Shown: positions 1,985 to 52,896 of the stretch, piece after piece
Layout of the letters: every line of letters begins with the position of its first letter
How positions within the stretch are numbered: position 1 is the stretch's first letter
IMG/VR virus record: IMGVR_UViG_3300027963_000035
Coordinates: 1 to 64,000 of that record
Strand: one strand, 5' to 3'
Length of the DNA stretch: 64,000 bases
The notes under the pieces: generated by a model
The model's database searches: none
Seen by the model: the letters and a program-made list of their open reading frames with translations, nothing else
Told to the model about the DNA's origin: nothing
Translations under genes and position numbers: made by a program

Positions 1985-4900
1985 TGCCAACATTTTTTTT
2001 AGACTACGAAAATGGAAACGACAATTACTCAGGAACTAGCTTTGCTTTACTAGCAAGTGCGGCAGACGGAGCAACAACAGCAGGATCCAGTTCTGTTTTT
2101 GGAACGTTCTCTTCAGCAAGTGCAAATTTTTTAAATAATGGAACATTGGCCCCAACAAAAAATCTTGCTTGGTATTCTAATTGCATGTACTTGAATAGCA
2201 CAGCCACAGCATCATTTATAGAAAAAGATTTAACAATCGGGCCCAGCGGAGTAGATGCCTCCGTATATAAATTGATGGAAGACAGTCAAACTAGCTCAGG
2301 ACATTGGTGGGCCAGCACCACATGGTACAATCCATTTGCTGCAACAACTCAGTATACGGTATCTGTGTATGTTAAGGCTGCTGAGAAAAATAAGGTAATT
2401 TTAAGACTAGACAATGATGCCAAGGCCGCAAGGTTTAATCTTAGTAGTGGAACAGTAGAGCAGACCGGGGCAAGTGCAACATCATCAATAAGCAGCATAG
2501 GAAACGGATGGTATAGAATATCCATAACAGCTACCACTACTGGAGCATCAGATAATATTCAAATTATTCTCATACCAAGTAGCAATACCGGGTTGGCTAT
2601 TACCTCCTATGACGGAGATAGCATTAGTGGAATATATTTATGCGGCTTACAAATAGAACAAGCATCATCAGCAACAGCATATGAAAAACCTCCGGAACAA
2701 TATTTGAGTTTATTTAATGGAACAAGCTATATAGCATACCATATAGTTCAAAGGATAAGTTCTACTAGCTTAAGAATAAACCAAACTCCAACATCAGCAA
2801 CAGCAGTATCGTCCCAAAGCAGTAGGCAATATTATATTGGTGGAAGATGGAAAACCTTTTCTAGCACAGGAGCATCGGCCACAAGATTGGCAAGTGATGA
2901 CACTTTACGAATAATGAGTAGTACCGATCCCACTAGTATTGGCAGTGGTACTTGGGTGGGTTCAAAAATGCAAGGAAGTTCTAGTATAAATAGTACCACA
3001 AATGCATCTCCTATTGTTGTAAGTTGTGCTAGTAGTATGGCTACTTTAGGAATAAGCAATGGAGATACTGTTGTATTAACTGGCCATACAACTAACACTA
3101 ATGCTAACGGAACATGGGAGGTCACTAGTGTTAGTGGATCTACTTGCGCTCTTGTAGGATCAACAGGAAACGGAGTTGGAGGAACTGTTGGATTTTTAAG
3201 AAAAGTTTCCAATCAAAGAGTAATATTATCATCATCCCCAATAGTTAATATTGCTAGTCACGGAAATAGAGGCAACGGAAGAACAGCATGGACAGCACAG
3301 ACTGCCGACATAACAACATCTTTGGCTACTACTGATGTTTTGGGTGGCATTAAAGAGGGCGACTGCTCAGATTCCATAGCGGTTGGAGCAAACTTCACCA
3401 CGGGATTGGCATCATACAAAGCTACCGGAACTTTGAATCTTAGCGGATACCAACAAATCAGTTTTTGGATAAAACAAATATCAGGCACAATCGGAGCATC
3501 TGGAGCATTGTCTTTAAAGTTATGCTCTGACACAGCAGGGGCAACAGCAGTAAACACATTCAACATTGAAAACTTGACGGTACTCAATAGATGGACTCCA
3601 ATAACCATAGATCTTGCTACCAACTTAGGATCAAGCATTCAGAGTATAGGATTCTATGTGAATACTGACAACGGCGCTCAAACATTCGTATTATCTAATA
3701 TTATTGCTTGCAAAGCAAGTTCTAGTGCAGATAGTCTCAATCTTTGTTCTTTGATTGGTAAAAATACTAGCGGAGAAACTTGGTGTGGAATCCAAAGTAT
3801 TAATGGAACAAGAGTAATGCTAGATACTAGTGGACAATTTGGACCTGTCACGATTGGATCCACTAACATACAGATACCAGGATATTACGGAACTAGTGAA
3901 ACAGTAACAACATATAAAAGAGAAACAATAAAGGTACCATTAGCGGCGGCAACTTCATCACAATCCTCTTTATTAAACTTTCAAATCGGAGGTCGAGCAC
4001 CACAATCTGCAGGAGTAGGTAATCCAATAATTTACTCTTTTGGTTGGAATAGAACTGATATGAGCACCAGAACAGGAGAAAGTTGGTTTGATGGAAGAAA
4101 TGGATTTGGTTTTGGAAATTATTCTTACTATATTGGGATGTTAACAGTAGATAGAGCTTGCTTTGTTAGATTTTATTATGGACTATTCTTGCCGGGCAAT
4201 ATGTATTCTATAGCTACTAACTGTCATTGCAATAATTGCGATCAATATGGCTTGTATGCTAGAGAACATATACGTTTCACATACGATACAATTTATTGTT
4301 GCTATTCTGGTGCTGGAGGACTTTTTGCATTCAGTCAGCCAGGACAAACAATTTTTAGAAATATGGTTGTATGTAGTAATAATGGAGCAGGTATCACATA
4401 CTACAATGCTATTTATAGTATATTAGATACTTTCACAATTAAAAATAATATTAATGGAATAGGTATTATTCAAGCTCATAATTTAACTGCAAATAATGGG
4501 ACGATATCCGATAGTTGGCAATATGGAGTAGACAATAATGGTCTTGGACATAGTAATGTTTTCAAAAATATTACATTTTCGACCAATACTACAGCATCTC
4601 ATAGAACTAATACTGGCGGACCATCATACTTTATTAATTGTGCTATGAATGATACTACTGAAGTTAGTGTTGCGAGTGTAGGATATGGTAATAATTCTAA
4701 GGTATTCTCTCACAACCATGACCAAACAAATAATCTTCACTATATATGGTGCGAATTCGGATTGATATACAGCACAACATCAGTGAGATACAGCAATAAT
4801 GGAATAGCCTGGGCGATGGCTCCTACAAACGTTAACGTAAGATCAATTAACTTTCCTTTAGATCTTAGTTTAGCAACAGTTGCTGTAAGTGCTAATAGTC

Positions 4901-6176: not shown

Positions 6177-6629
6177 ATGGGAATATTAGATAACAACAGC
6201 CAGCAACCGTCAGAGATGGTTGCGAATAGAATTAAAAATCAAACTCGTCAAACATATGTTATGATGGTAAATGCTTTTAACGAAGGAGCTAGGATATTTT
6301 GGCGAAATCCACGAGGATTACTACCAATAGAGATAACTACAGCTTTAGGCAAAGATGCAAAAGAAGTTTTTGAACTTCATGGTAAATTAGGTCAATTATT
6401 ATGGTCTATAAAACCAGAAGATATATCTGAAGGTTTGTCTTTAGTTGGAAGTTTTTCTTATAATGAAGATGGAACTGTAACTGTAGAACCACCTGCTACT
6501 GAACCACCTGCTACTGAACCACCTGCTACTGAACCACCTGCTACTGAACCACCTGCTACTGAACCACCTGCTACTGAACCACCTGCTACTGAACCACCTG
6601 CTACTGAACCACCTGAGCTTGGTCAATAA
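6177..6629 (+). CDS. Hypothetical protein with a C-terminal (EPPAT)n tail
   Basis: 150 aa ORF coupled to its neighbours. Confidence 0.7.
   Translation: MGILDNNSQQPSEMVANRIKNQTRQTYVMMVNAFNEGARIFWRNPRGLLPIEITTALGKDAKEVFELHGKLGQLLWSIKPEDISEGLSLVGSFSYNEDGTVTVEPPATEPPATEPPATEPPATEPPATEPPATEPPATEPPATEPPELGQ
6486..6615 (+). repeat. 15-bp coding tandem repeat gaaccacctgctact x8 plus a partial copy (EPPAT)
   Basis: Identical copies read directly from the sequence. Confidence 0.95.
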
Positions 6630-6631
6630 TT

Positions 6632-11458: not shown

Positions 11459-13969
11459 ATGGCATGGTCAGACTATTTTAAATTGTTTACATTTGGTTTC
11501 CAAAAGGATCCAAGTTCTAAGGTACAAGATACTAAAAATCTTACTGGGGCAGGCATCGCTCAAGCGGATGCCCTGCAGACATTTGCCGGTGATGATGTAG
11601 TTAATAATCCAGGTGGACTGATGGCATATCGTCAAACAAACGATATGATCGATATAACCACCCTAACGAATAGAACTGCTAGATACAAGGAATATGAGAG
11701 GCTTAGAAATCTACCCGAGATAGAAACTGTTGTTACGGTAATATCCGATGAAGCATGTGTTAGCGGAAACACAGAAATAAGCACTCCTTTTGGACTTAAA
11801 AAAATTGAAGACTTGGTAAAAAACAACCCAGATGAAAGATTTCTAGTTTATTGCTACGATGAAATTTCTAAAGATTATACCCTTGGCTGGGCATATAATC
11901 CAAGATTGGTTAAGAAAGAGAAAACAATAACCATAATATTGGATGATGGAAGCAAATTCACAGCTACTAGTGATCACAAAGTTTTAAACCGAAATGGGGA
12001 TTGGGTGGAAACAGGCTCCTTGAAAGAAGGAGACACACTCATGGCATTCTATAGATTGCCTGTAAATAATTATCAAACTAAATTAAATAAAAATCAGTTC
12101 CCCAGAGTATTTACATACAACAAAGGTTGGACTCACGAGAGAATGTTCGTTGATGAATGGCGAACAGGAAAAGTAGAAGAAGAAAATAAAAAGACATCAA
12201 AAATACTTCACATGTTAAGTAAAGGATTGGCTTTAAATAAAACATGTGAGTTAATCGGAATGACAGTTCCGGGTGTAATTGCTAATTTAAAGAGGATTGG
12301 GTTCACTACCACCGAAGTTCATAGATTAAGTAAGAAACAAGACCGCCGCAGAGTTATAGGTGTTTTCAAAAATGAAACAGAAGAAAATGTATATGATATA
12401 AGTGTAGAAAAACATAAGTGCTTTTGCACAGATAGTGTGGTCTTACATAATTGTCAAAAAGACACAGAAGGTAACATATGCAAATTGGAAATATCAAATG
12501 AAGAAGTTAGAAAAGAATTAGAATTCTTATTCTTCCATCGACAGATGTTGAATATAAATAAAAATGGGTGGAGCTGGTTTAAGAATCTTTGTGTGAATGG
12601 AGATCACTTCTTAGAACTGATAATAGATCCAGATAATCCGGAGGACGGATTATATAAAGCCATATCCCTGCCAGCAGAGACTATGTATCGCATAGAAACT
12701 ATCCGGGGTAAATTAATAGAATTCCAACAGAGTAAAGAAGGGCCGGACTATAGTGCTTTGATGAACCCCATACCATTGGGTCAAGATAATTTCGATCTTC
12801 AAAAATCTACTGCCATAAGATTCAACTTAAATCAAATCGTTCATTTCAGAATAGGAGAAGATAGAAAATTATTTTATCCTTATGGAGTGAGTTTGATAGA
12901 ACCAGCCAGAAGCCCTGCTCATCAATTAAGATTGATGGAAGATGCCATGGTCACATATAGATTAGCTAGAGCACCTGAGAGAAGAGTGTTTTATGTAGAT
13001 GTTGGTCAATTACCACCATTTAAAGTTGATAGCTTAATCGATAGAATGAAGGACCAGTTCAGAAAAAGAAAAATAGCCATGGGAAGCGGTTCCAGTGCTA
13101 ATCAAGTAGATGAAAGATGGCAGCCACCTGCAGTAGATGAAGATTATTGGTTGCCATTAAGGCCGGGCAGTAACACCAGAATAGAAACTCTTCCTGGGGC
13201 ACAGAATTTAGGTGAAGTTGATGATGCAATTTATTTTAGAAATAAACTTTTTGTGAGTTTAAATTTTCCAAAAAGTTATTTTAGTGGAGAGGACGTCAAT
13301 GCTACGAGAATGACTTTATCCGCACAGGATGTTAAATTTGCAAGAATGATCGAGAGATTACAATCTTCTTTTGAAGATGGGCTCTACGACATAGCAGATA
13401 GACACCTATATCTTCGTGGATTTCCTCAAGAACTCTATAAAGATCTTAAAATAAAGATGACTCCTCCAAGCGATTGGAGAGAATTAAGTAGAGCTGAAGT
13501 TGTTAATTCTAGATTAAATGTTGCCACACAACTTAAAACAGCAAATTTAATGAGCGATTATGATATTTACACTCAGTGGCTTCAATACAATGATCAAGAA
13601 ACTTCTGAGATGCTTAGTAGATTAAAGATTCAAAAACTAGAAGAATTAAAGATTCAAGTTTTATCTCAAAATCCTCAATTATTGGGGGTGGGCATTCCTC
13701 AAGAAAATAACGGAGATGAAACTGAGTTATCCGCAGTCCCTGGCGGCCCCGCACAAAATTTAGAGGCTCCTTCCGAAGATAGTGGAGAAACTGAAACTGA
13801 AACTCCTCAAGAAGAGCCCGCTCCATCTGAGGAGGAAACCTCAGAGGATAATAATGCCAAACCCCTCCCAGAACCAGATAAGCAGGATGTTGAAAAATAC
13901 GGTCTAGAAATAAAGGATTATGAAACAGAAATGGATAGTGAAAATCCAGACTACTCTATAGACGGTTAA
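11459..13969 (+). CDS. gp20: Portal vertex protein (T4 gp20-like), intein-containing
   Basis: Conserved gp20 motifs LMEDAMVTYRLARAPERRVFYVDVGQLP, EDYWLP, IETLPGAQNLGEVDD and VKFARMIERLQ, with an acidic C-terminal tail. Confidence 0.95.
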   Translation: MAWSDYFKLFTFGFQKDPSSKVQDTKNLTGAGIAQADALQTFAGDDVVNNPGGLMAYRQTNDMIDITTLTNRTARYKEYERLRNLPEIETVVTVISDEACVSGNTEISTPFGLKKIEDLVKNNPDERFLVYCYDEISKDYTLGWAYNPRLVKKEKTITIILDDGSKFTATSDHKVLNRNGDWVETGSLKEGDTLMAFYRLPVNNYQTKLNKNQFPRVFTYNKGWTHERMFVDEWRTGKVEEENKKTSKILHMLSKGLALNKTCELIGMTVPGVIANLKRIGFTTTEVHRLSKKQDRRRVIGVFKNETEENVYDISVEKHKCFCTDSVVLHNCQKDTEGNICKLEISNEEVRKELEFLFFHRQMLNINKNGWSWFKNLCVNGDHFLELIIDPDNPEDGLYKAISLPAETMYRIETIRGKLIEFQQSKEGPDYSALMNPIPLGQDNFDLQKSTAIRFNLNQIVHFRIGEDRKLFYPYGVSLIEPARSPAHQLRLMEDAMVTYRLARAPERRVFYVDVGQLPPFKVDSLIDRMKDQFRKRKIAMGSGSSANQVDERWQPPAVDEDYWLPLRPGSNTRIETLPGAQNLGEVDDAIYFRNKLFVSLNFPKSYFSGEDVNATRMTLSAQDVKFARMIERLQSSFEDGLYDIADRHLYLRGFPQELYKDLKIKMTPPSDWRELSRAEVVNSRLNVATQLKTANLMSDYDIYTQWLQYNDQETSEMLSRLKIQKLEELKIQVLSQNPQLLGVGIPQENNGDETELSAVPGGPAQNLEAPSEDSGETETETPQEEPAPSEEETSEDNNAKPLPEPDKQDVEKYGLEIKDYETEMDSENPDYSIDG
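11756..12451 (+). mobile_element. Intein (232 aa) in the portal protein with a degenerate central endonuclease/HTH remnant
   Basis: N-junction DEA|CVSGNTEI, block B TSDHKVL, block F VYDISVE and C-junction VVLHN|CQKD (Cys +1). Confidence 0.93.
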
Positions 13970-26209: not shown

Positions 26210-26665
26210 TTAGTATCCCGGGATAAAGGCCACAACGTCCCACTTGTCTCTGCCGGCATGATAAGTGGCCGCAAACAGATCGGTCTTTCCTGTGACTTCG
26301 CTAACCGGAAGAGGATCTGTTGCTCCGTCTGGTAGTGCGAATTTATTGCCTAATGTTAGTGTATATCCCGCATCTATCCAATTCATTCTTATCTTGATGG
26401 TTTTTCCGTCGACGGCACTGCCCGTCCAGGTAGGGTTGCTTATCGTCACGTTGTTGTCCACATCTACGTCGAATATGTCGCCGGAACTGGCGTTTATTGA
26501 TATCGATGTGTCAGTGCCTAGGTCTACCACTGTAGGCTTATAGAGAGATGCAATATCTCCTAATTTTATTTTTTCTGTTAGTGTTCCTGCGGCATTTGTT
26601 GCTGGCACAACTGCATCTTTATTTGCTGAGCCCAATGGTAATTCTGATATTTTTATATCTGCCAT
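26210..26665 (-). CDS. Tail/fibre-associated structural protein
   Basis: 151 aa with an MADIKISELP N-terminus typical of phage fibre proteins and an AAGGA Shine-Dalgarno. Confidence 0.65.
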   Translation of the reverse strand: MADIKISELPLGSANKDAVVPATNAAGTLTEKIKLGDIASLYKPTVVDLGTDTSISINASSGDIFDVDVDNNVTISNPTWTGSAVDGKTIKIRMNWIDAGYTLTLGNKFALPDGATDPLPVSEVTGKTDLFAATYHAGRDKWDVVAFIPGY

Positions 26666-26874
26666 TTTAATTCCTTTTTATTAAATAACATATATATCTA
26701 TACATAATTAAGGAAAATATGTTCAGTAATCTAAAATTAGAACCCACGGCGATGGAGACCCAGCTTCAACGTTAACAACTACGGTGAAGACTGTGATTTG
26801 CCCCAGAACCGCTGATTTTTTTTAAAAACTTTAAATAAAAAAAAGAAAAGTGCAAAATTACCCGTAAAAATAGG

Positions 26875-26933
26875 CTCAAAAAAATTTTTGGATAGGGGCT
26901 TGCGAGGGTTCAAGGAGTCGCTATACTGAGCCC
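26875..26933 (+). promoter_or_regulatory. Sigma70-type promoter resembling rrn P1
   Basis: A/T tract (UP-like) at about 26877-26889, -35 TTGCGA 26900-26905, 16-bp spacer, -10 TATACT 26922-26927 and GC-rich discriminator GAGCCC. Confidence 0.7.
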
Positions 26934-26941
26934 ATCAACGA

Positions 26942-26984
26942 CGTCGGAAACGATGAGTTGAAGAAAAAACTTGCTCTTTGACAA
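26942..26984 (+). promoter_or_regulatory. boxB-like GNRA hairpin plus boxA (TGCTCTTTGACA) antitermination leader
   Basis: cgtcg-GAAA-cgatg at 26942-26955. TGCTCTTTGACA at 26972-26983 matches the E. coli rrn boxA TGCTCTTTAACA at 11 of 12 positions. Confidence 0.7.
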
Positions 26985-27801
26985 TTTGAAACAAAGTCCT
27001 TGCTAACACTGAAAGGTGTTGGCGAAAAAATTAAGCCACAAGGACAATCGATGGAAACTGAAAAGTTTCCACGATCTCAAAAGCCTAATCCGTAAAAAGA
27101 AGGGCTGGGATATTACTAGTTTGCTGCAAAGCAAAAAGAGGTAGTATACGATAAAGAAGAAACCTTGAACTAAAAAATCAAGGGGGATTTTTGTCGGAAC
27201 TTTGTGGTGGGCTTCGGTAAGAGGATGTTTGACTTGTATAAATTTAAAAATTAGAAATAATTTTTAAAGACAAGAAGTCAGAACTAACGACGTTGAGGAA
27301 TTTGGGAACGCATTAGTCTTGAGAAAGACTATCCCACTGAAATCAAATGTAGCGGTCCTCTTAGTATCACGGGATAAGTTAAGGAGACAGGCAGTGTCTT
27401 TAACAACCCCTCTATTTTATTATGGAGCAACCGTGGCGACGGTGAATAGTGATATTGAGTCTGGGTGCTGAAAAGCAAAAACAACCCTAGAAACGACGTG
27501 GTGGCTCAAACACGTTAAACAAATGAGAGTGTTGTGGTGAATGTTCGGTACGAGTAAATCCAGATACTGCTAGATCAACCACTAAAGGGGTCACTGGTAA
27601 CAGGTGATATTTTGTGGGTAGTTTAGCTTTAAAAGAAATATGAGTGGCGAACGGACTACGACTGTCACATATAGGTAAAACGGTGGATGAAAAACATCCA
27701 ATGGTAGAGGAGACCTATAAGAACTGCTGTTAAAGTGACGGACTATTTTATGCGATTCATTCCTCTGTATATGAGTGGATCGTAAACTTCTTCTATCTAC
27801 T

Positions 27802-27843
27802 AAAGCCGGTTGAAACTAGAAATGGTTTCAACCGGCTTTTTTT
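27802..27843 (+). terminator. Rho-independent terminator ending the ncRNA
   Basis: 15-bp perfect stem aaagccggttgaaac / gtttcaaccggcttt followed by a T run. Confidence 0.92.
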
Positions 27844-27867
27844 GTTTATATTTTACTATTTTAGTTT

Positions 27868-28080
27868 GTGGAAGAGTATTTTTACATAAGAAGTGTTTTA
27901 AAATATTGGAACTTGGAATATCCATATACTCCAATGGGCAATGTATTAGATATCAATAAAGATATAAAATCATTAATAAAAAATTGCTATAGTTTAAATT
28001 GGACTCCACAAAGGTGTTGTTCAAGAATATATGAGATGTTCTTTTCTTCGGGAAGTCTCACCCTTAAAAAAGATGAATAA
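27868..28080 (+). CDS. Hypothetical protein (70 aa)
   Basis: ORF fills the gap between the terminator and the next gene. Confidence 0.45.
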   Translation: MEEYFYIRSVLKYWNLEYPYTPMGNVLDINKDIKSLIKNCYSLNWTPQRCCSRIYEMFFSSGSLTLKKDE

Positions 28081-28143
28081 AACTTAAAATTCAACATATT
28101 GTATTATATAAGGTATATAAGGTATATACAATAAAGGATCAAT

Positions 28144-30558
28144 ATGTTGAACATCCAGAACACAATGTCTAGGCTAAATTCTGATCACGCAGAAATAACT
28201 GCAATGGCACCGGATCTGAATTATTTCACAGATGAAGTTGAAAACTACATAAGTTGTCAATGTAATACTAGTAGAGTGAACGGCATTGCCCAACATGATG
28301 ATGGTGATATGCTTTTGGTCGGAGAAGGGTTTGTAGATGGCACGCCAGACAATAACTGGGAATGTTGCTACTCAGAGGTGGTAAAAATAAGCCAAAACGG
28401 TATCCAAGATGAAACATTTCCCGCTACAAGATTTAGTGATTCTGTCTATACTGTTGCCGTCCAACCTAATGGAAAAATATTATTAGGTGGTTGGTTCTAC
28501 AATCATTCTGTAGACGGATCTATTACAACACAAACTTCACACTATATTGCCAAATTTGATTCAAATGGTGTCTTTGACGCCAGTTTTGATTCTACATTAA
28601 ATGGCGCAATAGATGGAGTTGTGAATAAAATTCTAGCCTTAAGTGACAATACTTCGGTAGTGGCGGGCCGGTTCACTTCTAGAATTATGATCCTAAATGA
28701 TGATGGAACTCAAGTCCCGATAGAAGCAAACTCTAACTTTGACGCAGTATATGATGTTGCAATAGACTCTGAGGAAAGATTAATTGCAGTAGGATATAAT
28801 TTAGAAAGAAAACATATTATCAGATATGTATATGATAGTGGAACTTCAACATGGATTGAAGATGATACATTTATTCCTCCTGTTTTCAATAACGATAGTT
28901 TCTTGAAAACAGTTGCGGTTCAAGATGATAATAAGATAATAGTGGGCGGAAATTTTAGTGTAATCTCAGATACTGGAATAACCACAACACTATATAGCAT
29001 ATGTAGAATAAATGAAAATGGCTATATAGATACATCTTTTGGTTTAGACGCACAAGGAGCACAAAATCCTGGAATTGCTTACTACATCCCAGCTGGATAT
29101 TATGGCGAGGAAAATTTCTATCCTCCCTATATAACAAAGATTGAACTTTTAGATGATGGAAAAATGATTGTTGGTGGTAATTTCAATGCTTTCGGATATC
29201 CCGGAGACACACCATCAGTTAGAAATAACATCTGTAAAATTAATTCAGATGGATCACTGGACAGTTCTTTTGGCGGAGCAAATGATTTCTATGGAAATAA
29301 TCGATCTAGTAATCAAATAGATAATAATTCATACTACCCATCAGTAAATGATATATATCAAGTATCTTCTGGCGATATATGGGTTGGTGGATATTTTATT
29401 AAACCAAAAAGATACTATGTTAAATTAAATTCATCGGGAACGCCAGGTTCCTTTGGATCCGATTATATGCCATTAGTAACTGGTATTGATGATGGCGGAT
29501 TTGATATGTATGATGGCGGTAATTTCTTTAATACCAATCTAACTCAAATCTATGATGATATTAAAGAAGATGAAGTAGATTATGATCTTTCCATTCCTTC
29601 CACTCACACCCAGATGCCCAATGAAGTTTCTTTTGGTCCTCAATGGGCAGCAGGAGGTGCTTCAAAGAATATTTATTCACCAATATATTTCGACAGCACA
29701 ATAGAAGACGGAACAGATTATTTCGGAGAAGGAAGTCAATATTTCACTTCCATGTATCCTGGTATGTTTGTTTTAGTGGCCACAAATATAGATATAACTC
29801 AGTTTAGTATAACTGGAGATATCGGCGCAGACGGAGGAACTAGTTATTCAGTGGATGTTTTGTCAATAACATCTAGATCGAATGATTACACCGTATTTGC
29901 TAAGACCGTAGAAGCAGCACAAGAGGAAGAGGAAGTGGCGCCCACTCATTTAATAATTGTTCCGGGTAATAGTGATGGAATAACTCATCTTTATGACGAA
30001 TCTACAAATTATGACGATCACGCAGTCGATGGAATAACCGGTATAAAAGAAATATATGTAATAGTAATGTCTAAGCTTGATGGAAGTTTTATGACAACAT
30101 CTGAGATGGGAGATATAGCACAAAAATTCTTAGATACCATAACCGAAGAAGCCACCGTCACTACTACCACTACTACTGAGCCTTTTATTGTTGAAGCGGA
30201 AGAACCTAAATCTTGTGGTAGTACTATTTGCAACATTAATATAAGATGTTTGAAACATAATAAAGATTTAAAAATAGGATCCACTTTGAATTCTTGTGGA
30301 TGTTCTACTTGGAAATTTATTGATCCAGGTACTAAGTTAAAAGGAGGAGTACTAAGCGGATCATCAAAGAAGGGAGCATGGATTCCTGCATCAACAGTCT
30401 GTTCGCAGATGCTTTATTCGTATCCTTCAAAGGTTGTTTCTGCTGCACCGGTGACAACCACCACGACGGCCCCAACCACAACAGTGGCTCCCACAACCAC
30501 AACAGTGGCTCCCACAACCACAACAGTGGCTCCCACAACCACAACAGTGGCTCCCTGA
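28144..30558 (+). CDS. Beta-propeller (delta-60/DUF5122-like repeat) protein with Cys-rich and Thr-rich C-terminus
   Basis: Repeats VAVQPNGKILLGG, AVQDDNKIIVGGNF and DGKMIVGGNF...DGSLDSSF; TTTTVAP tail. Confidence 0.8.
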   Translation: MLNIQNTMSRLNSDHAEITAMAPDLNYFTDEVENYISCQCNTSRVNGIAQHDDGDMLLVGEGFVDGTPDNNWECCYSEVVKISQNGIQDETFPATRFSDSVYTVAVQPNGKILLGGWFYNHSVDGSITTQTSHYIAKFDSNGVFDASFDSTLNGAIDGVVNKILALSDNTSVVAGRFTSRIMILNDDGTQVPIEANSNFDAVYDVAIDSEERLIAVGYNLERKHIIRYVYDSGTSTWIEDDTFIPPVFNNDSFLKTVAVQDDNKIIVGGNFSVISDTGITTTLYSICRINENGYIDTSFGLDAQGAQNPGIAYYIPAGYYGEENFYPPYITKIELLDDGKMIVGGNFNAFGYPGDTPSVRNNICKINSDGSLDSSFGGANDFYGNNRSSNQIDNNSYYPSVNDIYQVSSGDIWVGGYFIKPKRYYVKLNSSGTPGSFGSDYMPLVTGIDDGGFDMYDGGNFFNTNLTQIYDDIKEDEVDYDLSIPSTHTQMPNEVSFGPQWAAGGASKNIYSPIYFDSTIEDGTDYFGEGSQYFTSMYPGMFVLVATNIDITQFSITGDIGADGGTSYSVDVLSITSRSNDYTVFAKTVEAAQEEEEVAPTHLIIVPGNSDGITHLYDESTNYDDHAVDGITGIKEIYVIVMSKLDGSFMTTSEMGDIAQKFLDTITEEATVTTTTTTEPFIVEAEEPKSCGSTICNINIRCLKHNKDLKIGSTLNSCGCSTWKFIDPGTKLKGGVLSGSSKKGAWIPASTVCSQMLYSYPSKVVSAAPVTTTTTAPTTTVAPTTTTVAPTTTTVAPTTTTVAP
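30469..30555 (+). repeat. 21-bp coding tandem repeat (PTTTTVA) x~4
   Basis: cccacaaccacaacagtggct: three exact copies and one degenerate copy. Confidence 0.9.
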
Positions 30559-43608: not shown

Positions 43609-43775
43609 TAGTTTCTCCCTAAGATAATTTTGTTTTTGCAAAAAGGTTCGATACTAGTTTAGTATATTGTTGAATAAAACCTTAAATGTATATACACTTT
43701 TGCCTTTAAAAATTTTTCAAAAAAAACATATATACATTTTAGTGTTAGTTAAACAAACAAAATTAAAGGAAAAAT

Positions 43776-52824: not shown

Positions 52825-52896
52825 TTTAATTTTTTCTATTTATATGAACTATATATTTATAGAAGTATATACAACTTTAGAAAAAAGGAGTTTTCT

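Follow-up and report, generated by a model that had tools for sequence, protein, structure and literature searches.

A roughly 1-kb putative structured RNA that matches no described RNA family in a small group of freshwater T4-like jumbo phages

What is encoded by a stretch of more than one kilobase that carries no open reading frame of appreciable length in an otherwise gene-dense phage genome? The window analysed here, i.e., the first 64,000 nucleotides of a 251-kb viral contig (IMGVR_UViG_3300027963_000035, also Ga0209400_1000004), belongs to a T4-type jumbo phage with a gp20-type portal protein, a gp23-type major capsid protein and a T4-type terminase. The portal protein (11459-13969) carries an intein splicing domain at residues 115-331, and tandem 15-nt repeats (ACTGAACCACCTGCT, encoding a TEPPA-type repeat) lie at positions 6540-6631, at the 3' end of a 150-aa ORF (6177-6629). 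The closest capsid protein among 50,697 phage records derives from an uncultured 595-kb phage (75% identity). Cellular relatives of the 804-aa DUF5122 beta-propeller protein encoded beside the locus are mostly T9SS-sorted proteins of Bacteroidota, hence a host in this phylum is a reasonable inference. Between the 151-aa gene (26210-26665, minus strand) and the 804-aa gene (28144-30558, plus strand), no ORF of 60 aa or more is present over 1,202 nt (26666-27867). An earlier note, made from the sequence alone, proposed that positions 26934-27843 encode a giant structured RNA with its own promoter and terminator, either GOLLD/ROOL-like or of an undescribed class. Our analysis supports the core of this inference, and of its two alternatives favours the undescribed class.

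All hairpins listed in the earlier note are present at their places in the sequence. The + strand of 26934-27843 folds at -292.1 kcal/mol, against -214.0 +/- 8.3 for dinucleotide shuffles (z -9.4), whereas the minus strand gives z -4.0. Four 300-nt pieces of the + strand of the region give z -3.1 to -5.4, while sixty-nine background pieces of the same genome give -0.5 +/- 1.5 with a minimum of -5.6, although one or two background pieces, reaching -5.6 on the + strand and -6.0 on the minus strand, are as strong as pieces of the RNA. Furthermore, 11 hairpins with a stem of 4 bp or more and a GNRA loop were counted in 26824-27846, against a mean of 1.20 +/- 1.08 and a maximum of 5 in 2,000 dinucleotide shuffles. 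The GUAA hairpin of the earlier note has a bulged stem and is not counted among the 11. The terminator contains 17 pairs and not 15 as had been stated. The observation is thus real and far beyond chance.

Pattern scans, neighbour-protein searches and exact-protein look-ups in metagenome contigs revealed five distinct sequence variants. These are the window itself (also loci L048 and L049), a 323-kb contig (L002, 98.1% identical), L045 (98.7%), L003, which is identical to L046 from a second sample (93.5%), and a more distant type known only for its 3' half (L043, L057 and L059, 87.9%). All three assemblies of this last type break inside the RNA (L043 and L059 at window-equivalent 27373, L057 at 27314), and the two that break at the same base may derive from the same sample. 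Scans of IMG/VR with exact and purine/pyrimidine-degenerate patterns from three different blocks always returned the same three contigs, a metagenome scan added the single partial variant L043, and protein-anchored searches added L045, L046, L048, L049, L057 and L059. A scan of 185,579 species genomes gave only a chance match inside an 873-aa ORF of a Chitinophagales MAG. Phages whose DUF5122 protein is only about 45% identical, and 30 loci carrying relatives of the 151-aa gene, have neither such an RNA nor an ORF-free gap of 450 nt or more. The L003/L046 phages share the intein-containing arrangement of the portal gene, and loci L004 and L005 (same two jumbo contigs, about 100 kb from the RNA) each carry a second DUF5122/delta-60-repeat beta-propeller gene, 35% identical to the 804-aa protein.

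Comparison of the variants placed the conserved unit at 26824-27846 and not at 26934-27843 (Table 1). By blastn the unit is 93.0% identical to the L003/L038 phage over 1,028 nt, against 64.8% and 74-78% (64.8-78.2% overall) in the coding DNA on either side and 58% in the 804-aa protein. For L043 the values are 87.3% against 76.4%, and in L045 the RNA is 98.7% identical although the adjacent protein is only 72% identical. High identity with different flanks could, however, partly reflect recent transfer of the cassette between phages rather than long-term constraint. The window lacks, at 26820-26823, a roughly 40-nt A/T-rich segment that three relatives (L002:~4650-4690, L045 and L003) have immediately upstream of the module; it contains a small hairpin (uucuuu-ugcc-aaagaa) and may be a terminator or regulatory stem-loop of the kind that flanks mobile cassettes in T4-type phages.

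Table 1. Features of the conserved unit in window coordinates, with the sequence changes seen among the five variants
Position	Strand	Feature	Observations
26824..27846	+	Conserved module: whole RNA gene with its upstream control region	Pairwise identity 87.9-98.7% among the five variants; similarity stops at about 26824 and at the end of the terminator T-run
26824..26875	+	A-rich conserved 5' segment; candidate promoter region (function inferred only)	Nearly invariant in four variants; contains TTTAAATA at 26830-26837
26876..26891	+	Small A/U-rich hairpin (P0a)	RNAalifold local consensus; U-G closing pair becomes C-G in L003 and L045; weak support
26896..26933	+	Hairpin P0b, containing the previously proposed '-35' (26900-26905) and '-10' (26922-26927)	P0a/P0b consensus has 19 predicted pairs, none broken; its G-U pairs exist only on the + strand
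26942..27200	+	5' domain, a series of hairpins: GAAA at 26947, 27011 and 27060; GCAA at 27126; ccuuga/ucaagg at 27163/27178	Stem 27002-27023 changes only by wobble-compatible transitions; stem 27047-27075 has a U-A to A-U swap
27228..27336	+	Central hairpins: 11-bp all-A/U stem with GAAA loop (27243-27268) and GAGA hairpin (27314-27331)	Almost invariant
27378..27443	+	Hairpin 27378-27404 plus two small invariant hairpins (27410-27427 and 27430-27443)	Two compensatory pairs in the L043 type (U-A to C-G and G-C to U-A); block 27407-27473 invariant between the window, L002 and L003
27531..27662	+	Long irregular hairpin domain capped by a GUAA loop	45 predicted pairs, 14 vary: 13 stay paired, 3 of them by double changes, 1 breaks
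27662..27797	+	3' multi-stem domain: cugucac/gugacgg enclosing uauaggu/accuaua and uggaug/caucca, then hairpin 27751-27784	L043 type: A-U to G-C at 27673/27716 (stem 27670-27719) and C-G to U-A in 27751-27784; L003: G-C to G-U
27802..27846	+	Intrinsic terminator: 17-bp stem (27802-27839), GAAA loop, U-run to 27846	Stem and loop identical in all five variants; similarity between phages ends immediately after the U-run

Interestingly, the neighbours of the unit differ in three phage backgrounds. In the window and L002 the order is 151-aa gene, RNA, 804-aa gene; in the window, on the side of the 151-aa gene lies also a Laminin_G_3 tail-fibre-like gene, which corrects the earlier description of the flanks as tail-fibre and virion genes. 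In the L003/L038 phage the RNA follows the metallophosphatase gene, which in the window lies 8 kb away, and the 804-aa homologue is inverted. In the L043 type the RNA converges on a methyltransferase-like gene and the 804-aa gene is missing from the site. In L045 an IS200/IS605-family element (L045:1251-2516, and L045:~1236-1300), carrying a TnpB (OrfB_IS605/Cas12f-like, minus strand) and a Y1 transposase, sits about 50 nt after the terminator, directly after a TTAC that is uninterrupted in the window (about 27888-27891), and this element and another gene lie between the RNA and the 804-aa gene. The unit therefore behaves as an independent cassette. A role as cis-acting leader, regulatory region or long 5' UTR of the 804-aa gene, suggested by its position on the same strand about 300 nt upstream in the window, is very unlikely, given the invariant terminator that separates the two and the variable arrangement in the other phages. 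An antisense regulator is equally improbable, as an nhmmer search found no complementary copy elsewhere in the window. IS605/IscB-associated guide RNAs (omega RNA, HEARO) lie at the end of, and are always linked to, a TnpB/IscB gene, but no such gene lies next to the RNA in the window, L002 or L003, and the TnpA/TnpB pair of L045 is a separate insertion.

To ask whether selection acts on RNA pairing, the minimum-energy fold of the window sequence alone was used as a hypothesis independent of the relatives, and the effect of their substitutions on it was examined. L003 breaks 8 pairs where 17.2 are expected if the same substitutions are redistributed among same-base columns (P=0.0006), and L043 breaks 4 where 17.1 are expected (P<0.0002), with 3 and 5 double compensatory changes against 0.6 and 1.1 expected. 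The same test on the reverse complement showed no effect (17 broken against 17.7 expected, and 13 against 14.5). With all five variants, 50 of 70 variable pairs stay paired, 7 of them by double changes, whereas slid controls give 17-28 kept and 0-1 double. In full, 326 pairs split into 256 invariant, 43 changed on one side but still paired, 7 compensatory and 20 with a break, and sliding the 3' partners by 1-3 columns gives 17-27 kept, 0-1 compensatory and 43-49 broken. The best-tested part is the long irregular hairpin domain (Table 1). As only five close variants exist, most pairs never vary; long-range helices also differ between predictions, and one of them (27349-27354 with about 27721-27726) is contradicted by the L057 sequence. 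The hairpin loop GGCUCA (27503-27508) is perfectly complementary to UGAGCC (26928-26933) in the 3' strand of P0b, so a long-range or pseudoknot contact is possible, although the loop differs in the L043 type, whose 5' half is unknown. A DNA-level element (replication origin, packaging site or recombination cassette) or a decaying gene, from which no functional RNA is made, might be suggested by the A/T-rich 5' 100 nt and by the different contexts of the module, in the way that mobile regulatory cassettes of T4-type phages may behave. This is very unlikely, since pairing is preserved through G-U pairs that exist only on the + strand, and conservation above that of the neighbouring genes excludes a decaying gene.

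No coding signal was found. The small ORFs of the region are interrupted by indels or stops in relatives, and substitutions fall evenly on the three phases (22/21/20). The one ORF that stays open in all variants (27319-27471, TTG start) lies in a nearly invariant block, and its few changes are amino-acid-changing hairpin compensations. A DGR template, an internal duplication or tandem antitoxin-type repeats were not supported either, as there is no second copy in the window and the only repeat is a 16-nt unit, TGCTG(C/A)AAAGCAAAAA, comprising a GNRA hairpin plus an A-run, whose two copies (27122-27137 and 27466-27481) lie 344 nt apart inside the RNA and both vary among relatives.

The promoter proposed in the earlier note (TTGCGA, 16 nt, TATACT; 26900-26927) is the only sigma-70-like match upstream, but it is not supported, as such matches are no more frequent than by chance (5 sites in 2.6 kb against 7.1 expected). 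More importantly, seven substitutions in L003 fall in its presumed spacer, five of them in pairs of hairpin P0b, and all five keep pairing (A-U to G-C, U-A to C-G and U-G to C-G, including two compensatory pairs), while L045 adds a C-G to U-G change. That is the behaviour of transcribed, folded RNA and not of a spacer. Conservation also begins 110 nt upstream of the proposed start. Hence, the 5' end probably lies 40-110 nt further upstream, most likely somewhere in 26840-26895, giving an RNA of about 950-1,000 nt. The global minimum-energy pairing of the 5' 90 nt was not supported by L003 (6 of 10 changed pairs broken), whereas the local hairpins were. Candidate promoters are TTTAAATA, which appears to resemble the T4 late-promoter motif, and a weak extended -10 near 26851-26859, but neither could be validated. 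The pattern TWTAAATA is 2-fold enriched in the window (49 against 24.2 +/- 5.2), as is TATATAC (20 against 10.5), but neither is clearly placed upstream of genes, and the Bacteroidota-type -7 motif is not enriched (202 against 200.7). The palindromic motif GTATATAC recurs in intergenic regions between divergent genes and just upstream of the 804-aa gene (28113-28129, 43688-43695 and 52865-52872) and may be a phage promoter or operator motif.

Does the RNA belong to a described family? No Rfam 15 model reached its gathering score over the 64 kb, and a cmscan with permissive filters on 26600-28200 listed only terminator look-alikes and sub-threshold noise at E<=10, which we take to cover GOLLD, ROOL, OLE, group I and group II introns, RNase P and tmRNA; likewise, no SRP, 6S, phi29 pRNA or rRNA model matched. 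A blastn search of 50,697 phage records gave nothing at 1e-5 and only chance hits at E<=10, and a covariance model built from the 27528-27670 domain found no further copies in 505 kb of related loci. Literature searches found no description of this RNA, and a paper on a possibly related lineage of aquatic jumbo phages does not mention non-coding RNA. GOLLD is likewise encoded by phages and prophages, occurs in lake metagenomes, exceeds 800 nt, has many helices and no known function, and its expression rises during lysis (PMC12286853). The RNA described here is longer, is known from only five variants and has no adjacent tRNA genes, ARAGORN having found no tRNA or tmRNA in the 64-kb window, whereas GOLLD is frequently located next to tRNA genes. 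ROOL (Rumen-Originating, Ornate, Large) is also a large, ornate RNA of phages and prophages, without a known protein partner and thought to act as an RNA-only assembly (PMC12286853), but it differs in habitat and phage type, and no tRNA island lies near the present RNA. A very divergent GOLLD or ROOL missed by the Rfam models, to which the shared lake-phage ecology, similar size and ornate folding might point, is therefore improbable. OLE and raiA-motif RNAs are large, highly conserved, structured bacterial RNAs that work through architecture and protein binding (PMC12054373, PMC12968392), but those are chromosomal RNAs of Bacillota and Actinomycetota with known genetic partners, while the present RNA is phage-borne and gave no model match.

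A new large ribozyme, processing itself or cleaving or ligating RNA or DNA, remains the main alternative, as the size, the many GNRA loops and the multi-helix junctions are typical of such molecules and blocks of 45-67 nt are invariant. It is nevertheless considered unlikely. No ribozyme model matched beyond a Hairpin-meta2 hit at 9.8 bits against a 210-bit threshold, no domain-V-like hairpin was seen by eye, and no interrupted host gene or associated enzyme was observed. The unit has its own terminator and lies between complete genes, and Pfam found no reverse transcriptase in the 29 ORFs scanned, contrary to what would be expected of group I or group II introns.

Taken together, we conclude with good confidence that 26824-27846 is very probably, in the absence of expression data, a free-standing gene for a highly folded non-coding RNA of an undescribed family, carried by a narrow clade of freshwater T4-like jumbo phages whose host is probably in the Bacteroidota. 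The RNA may be transcribed during infection from a promoter within 26824-26895 and fold into a compact body held together by its many GNRA loops and A-rich linkers docking into helices. The lack of any fixed neighbour and of a complementary target in the window, the size of the RNA, the density of GNRA loops and A-rich linkers and the invariant blocks argue against an antisense RNA, a leader or a guide RNA and for an RNA acting through its three-dimensional architecture. We tentatively favour, by analogy alone since nothing in the sequence identifies a partner or an activity, a trans-acting role as a scaffold, a cage-like self-assembly or a sink for a host or phage macromolecule, in the way that GOLLD, ROOL and OLE are thought to act; GOLLD and ROOL have been shown to self-assemble into RNA-only cages of unknown cargo (PMC12286853). 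It is a more speculative possibility that the RNA founds a new class of kilobase-sized phage RNAs that either self-assembles into an RNA-only cage or lattice or is a new large ribozyme, used by jumbo phages of Bacteroidota to remodel the infected cell.

Very few bacterial or phage non-coding RNAs exceed 500 nt, and each one found so far (rRNAs, RNase P, group I and II introns, OLE, GOLLD, ROOL) has turned out to have unusual biochemistry or architecture. The rarity of the present RNA limits the comparative evidence, and the same rarity probably explains why family-discovery pipelines have missed it. It would provide a new, well-bounded target for cryo-EM and for asking what such RNAs do during infection. 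A roughly 1-kb ornate RNA that is conserved more tightly than the phage's own structural genes would be among the largest structured phage RNAs known, and would extend this kind of RNA to T4-like jumbo phages of freshwater, probably infecting Bacteroidota.
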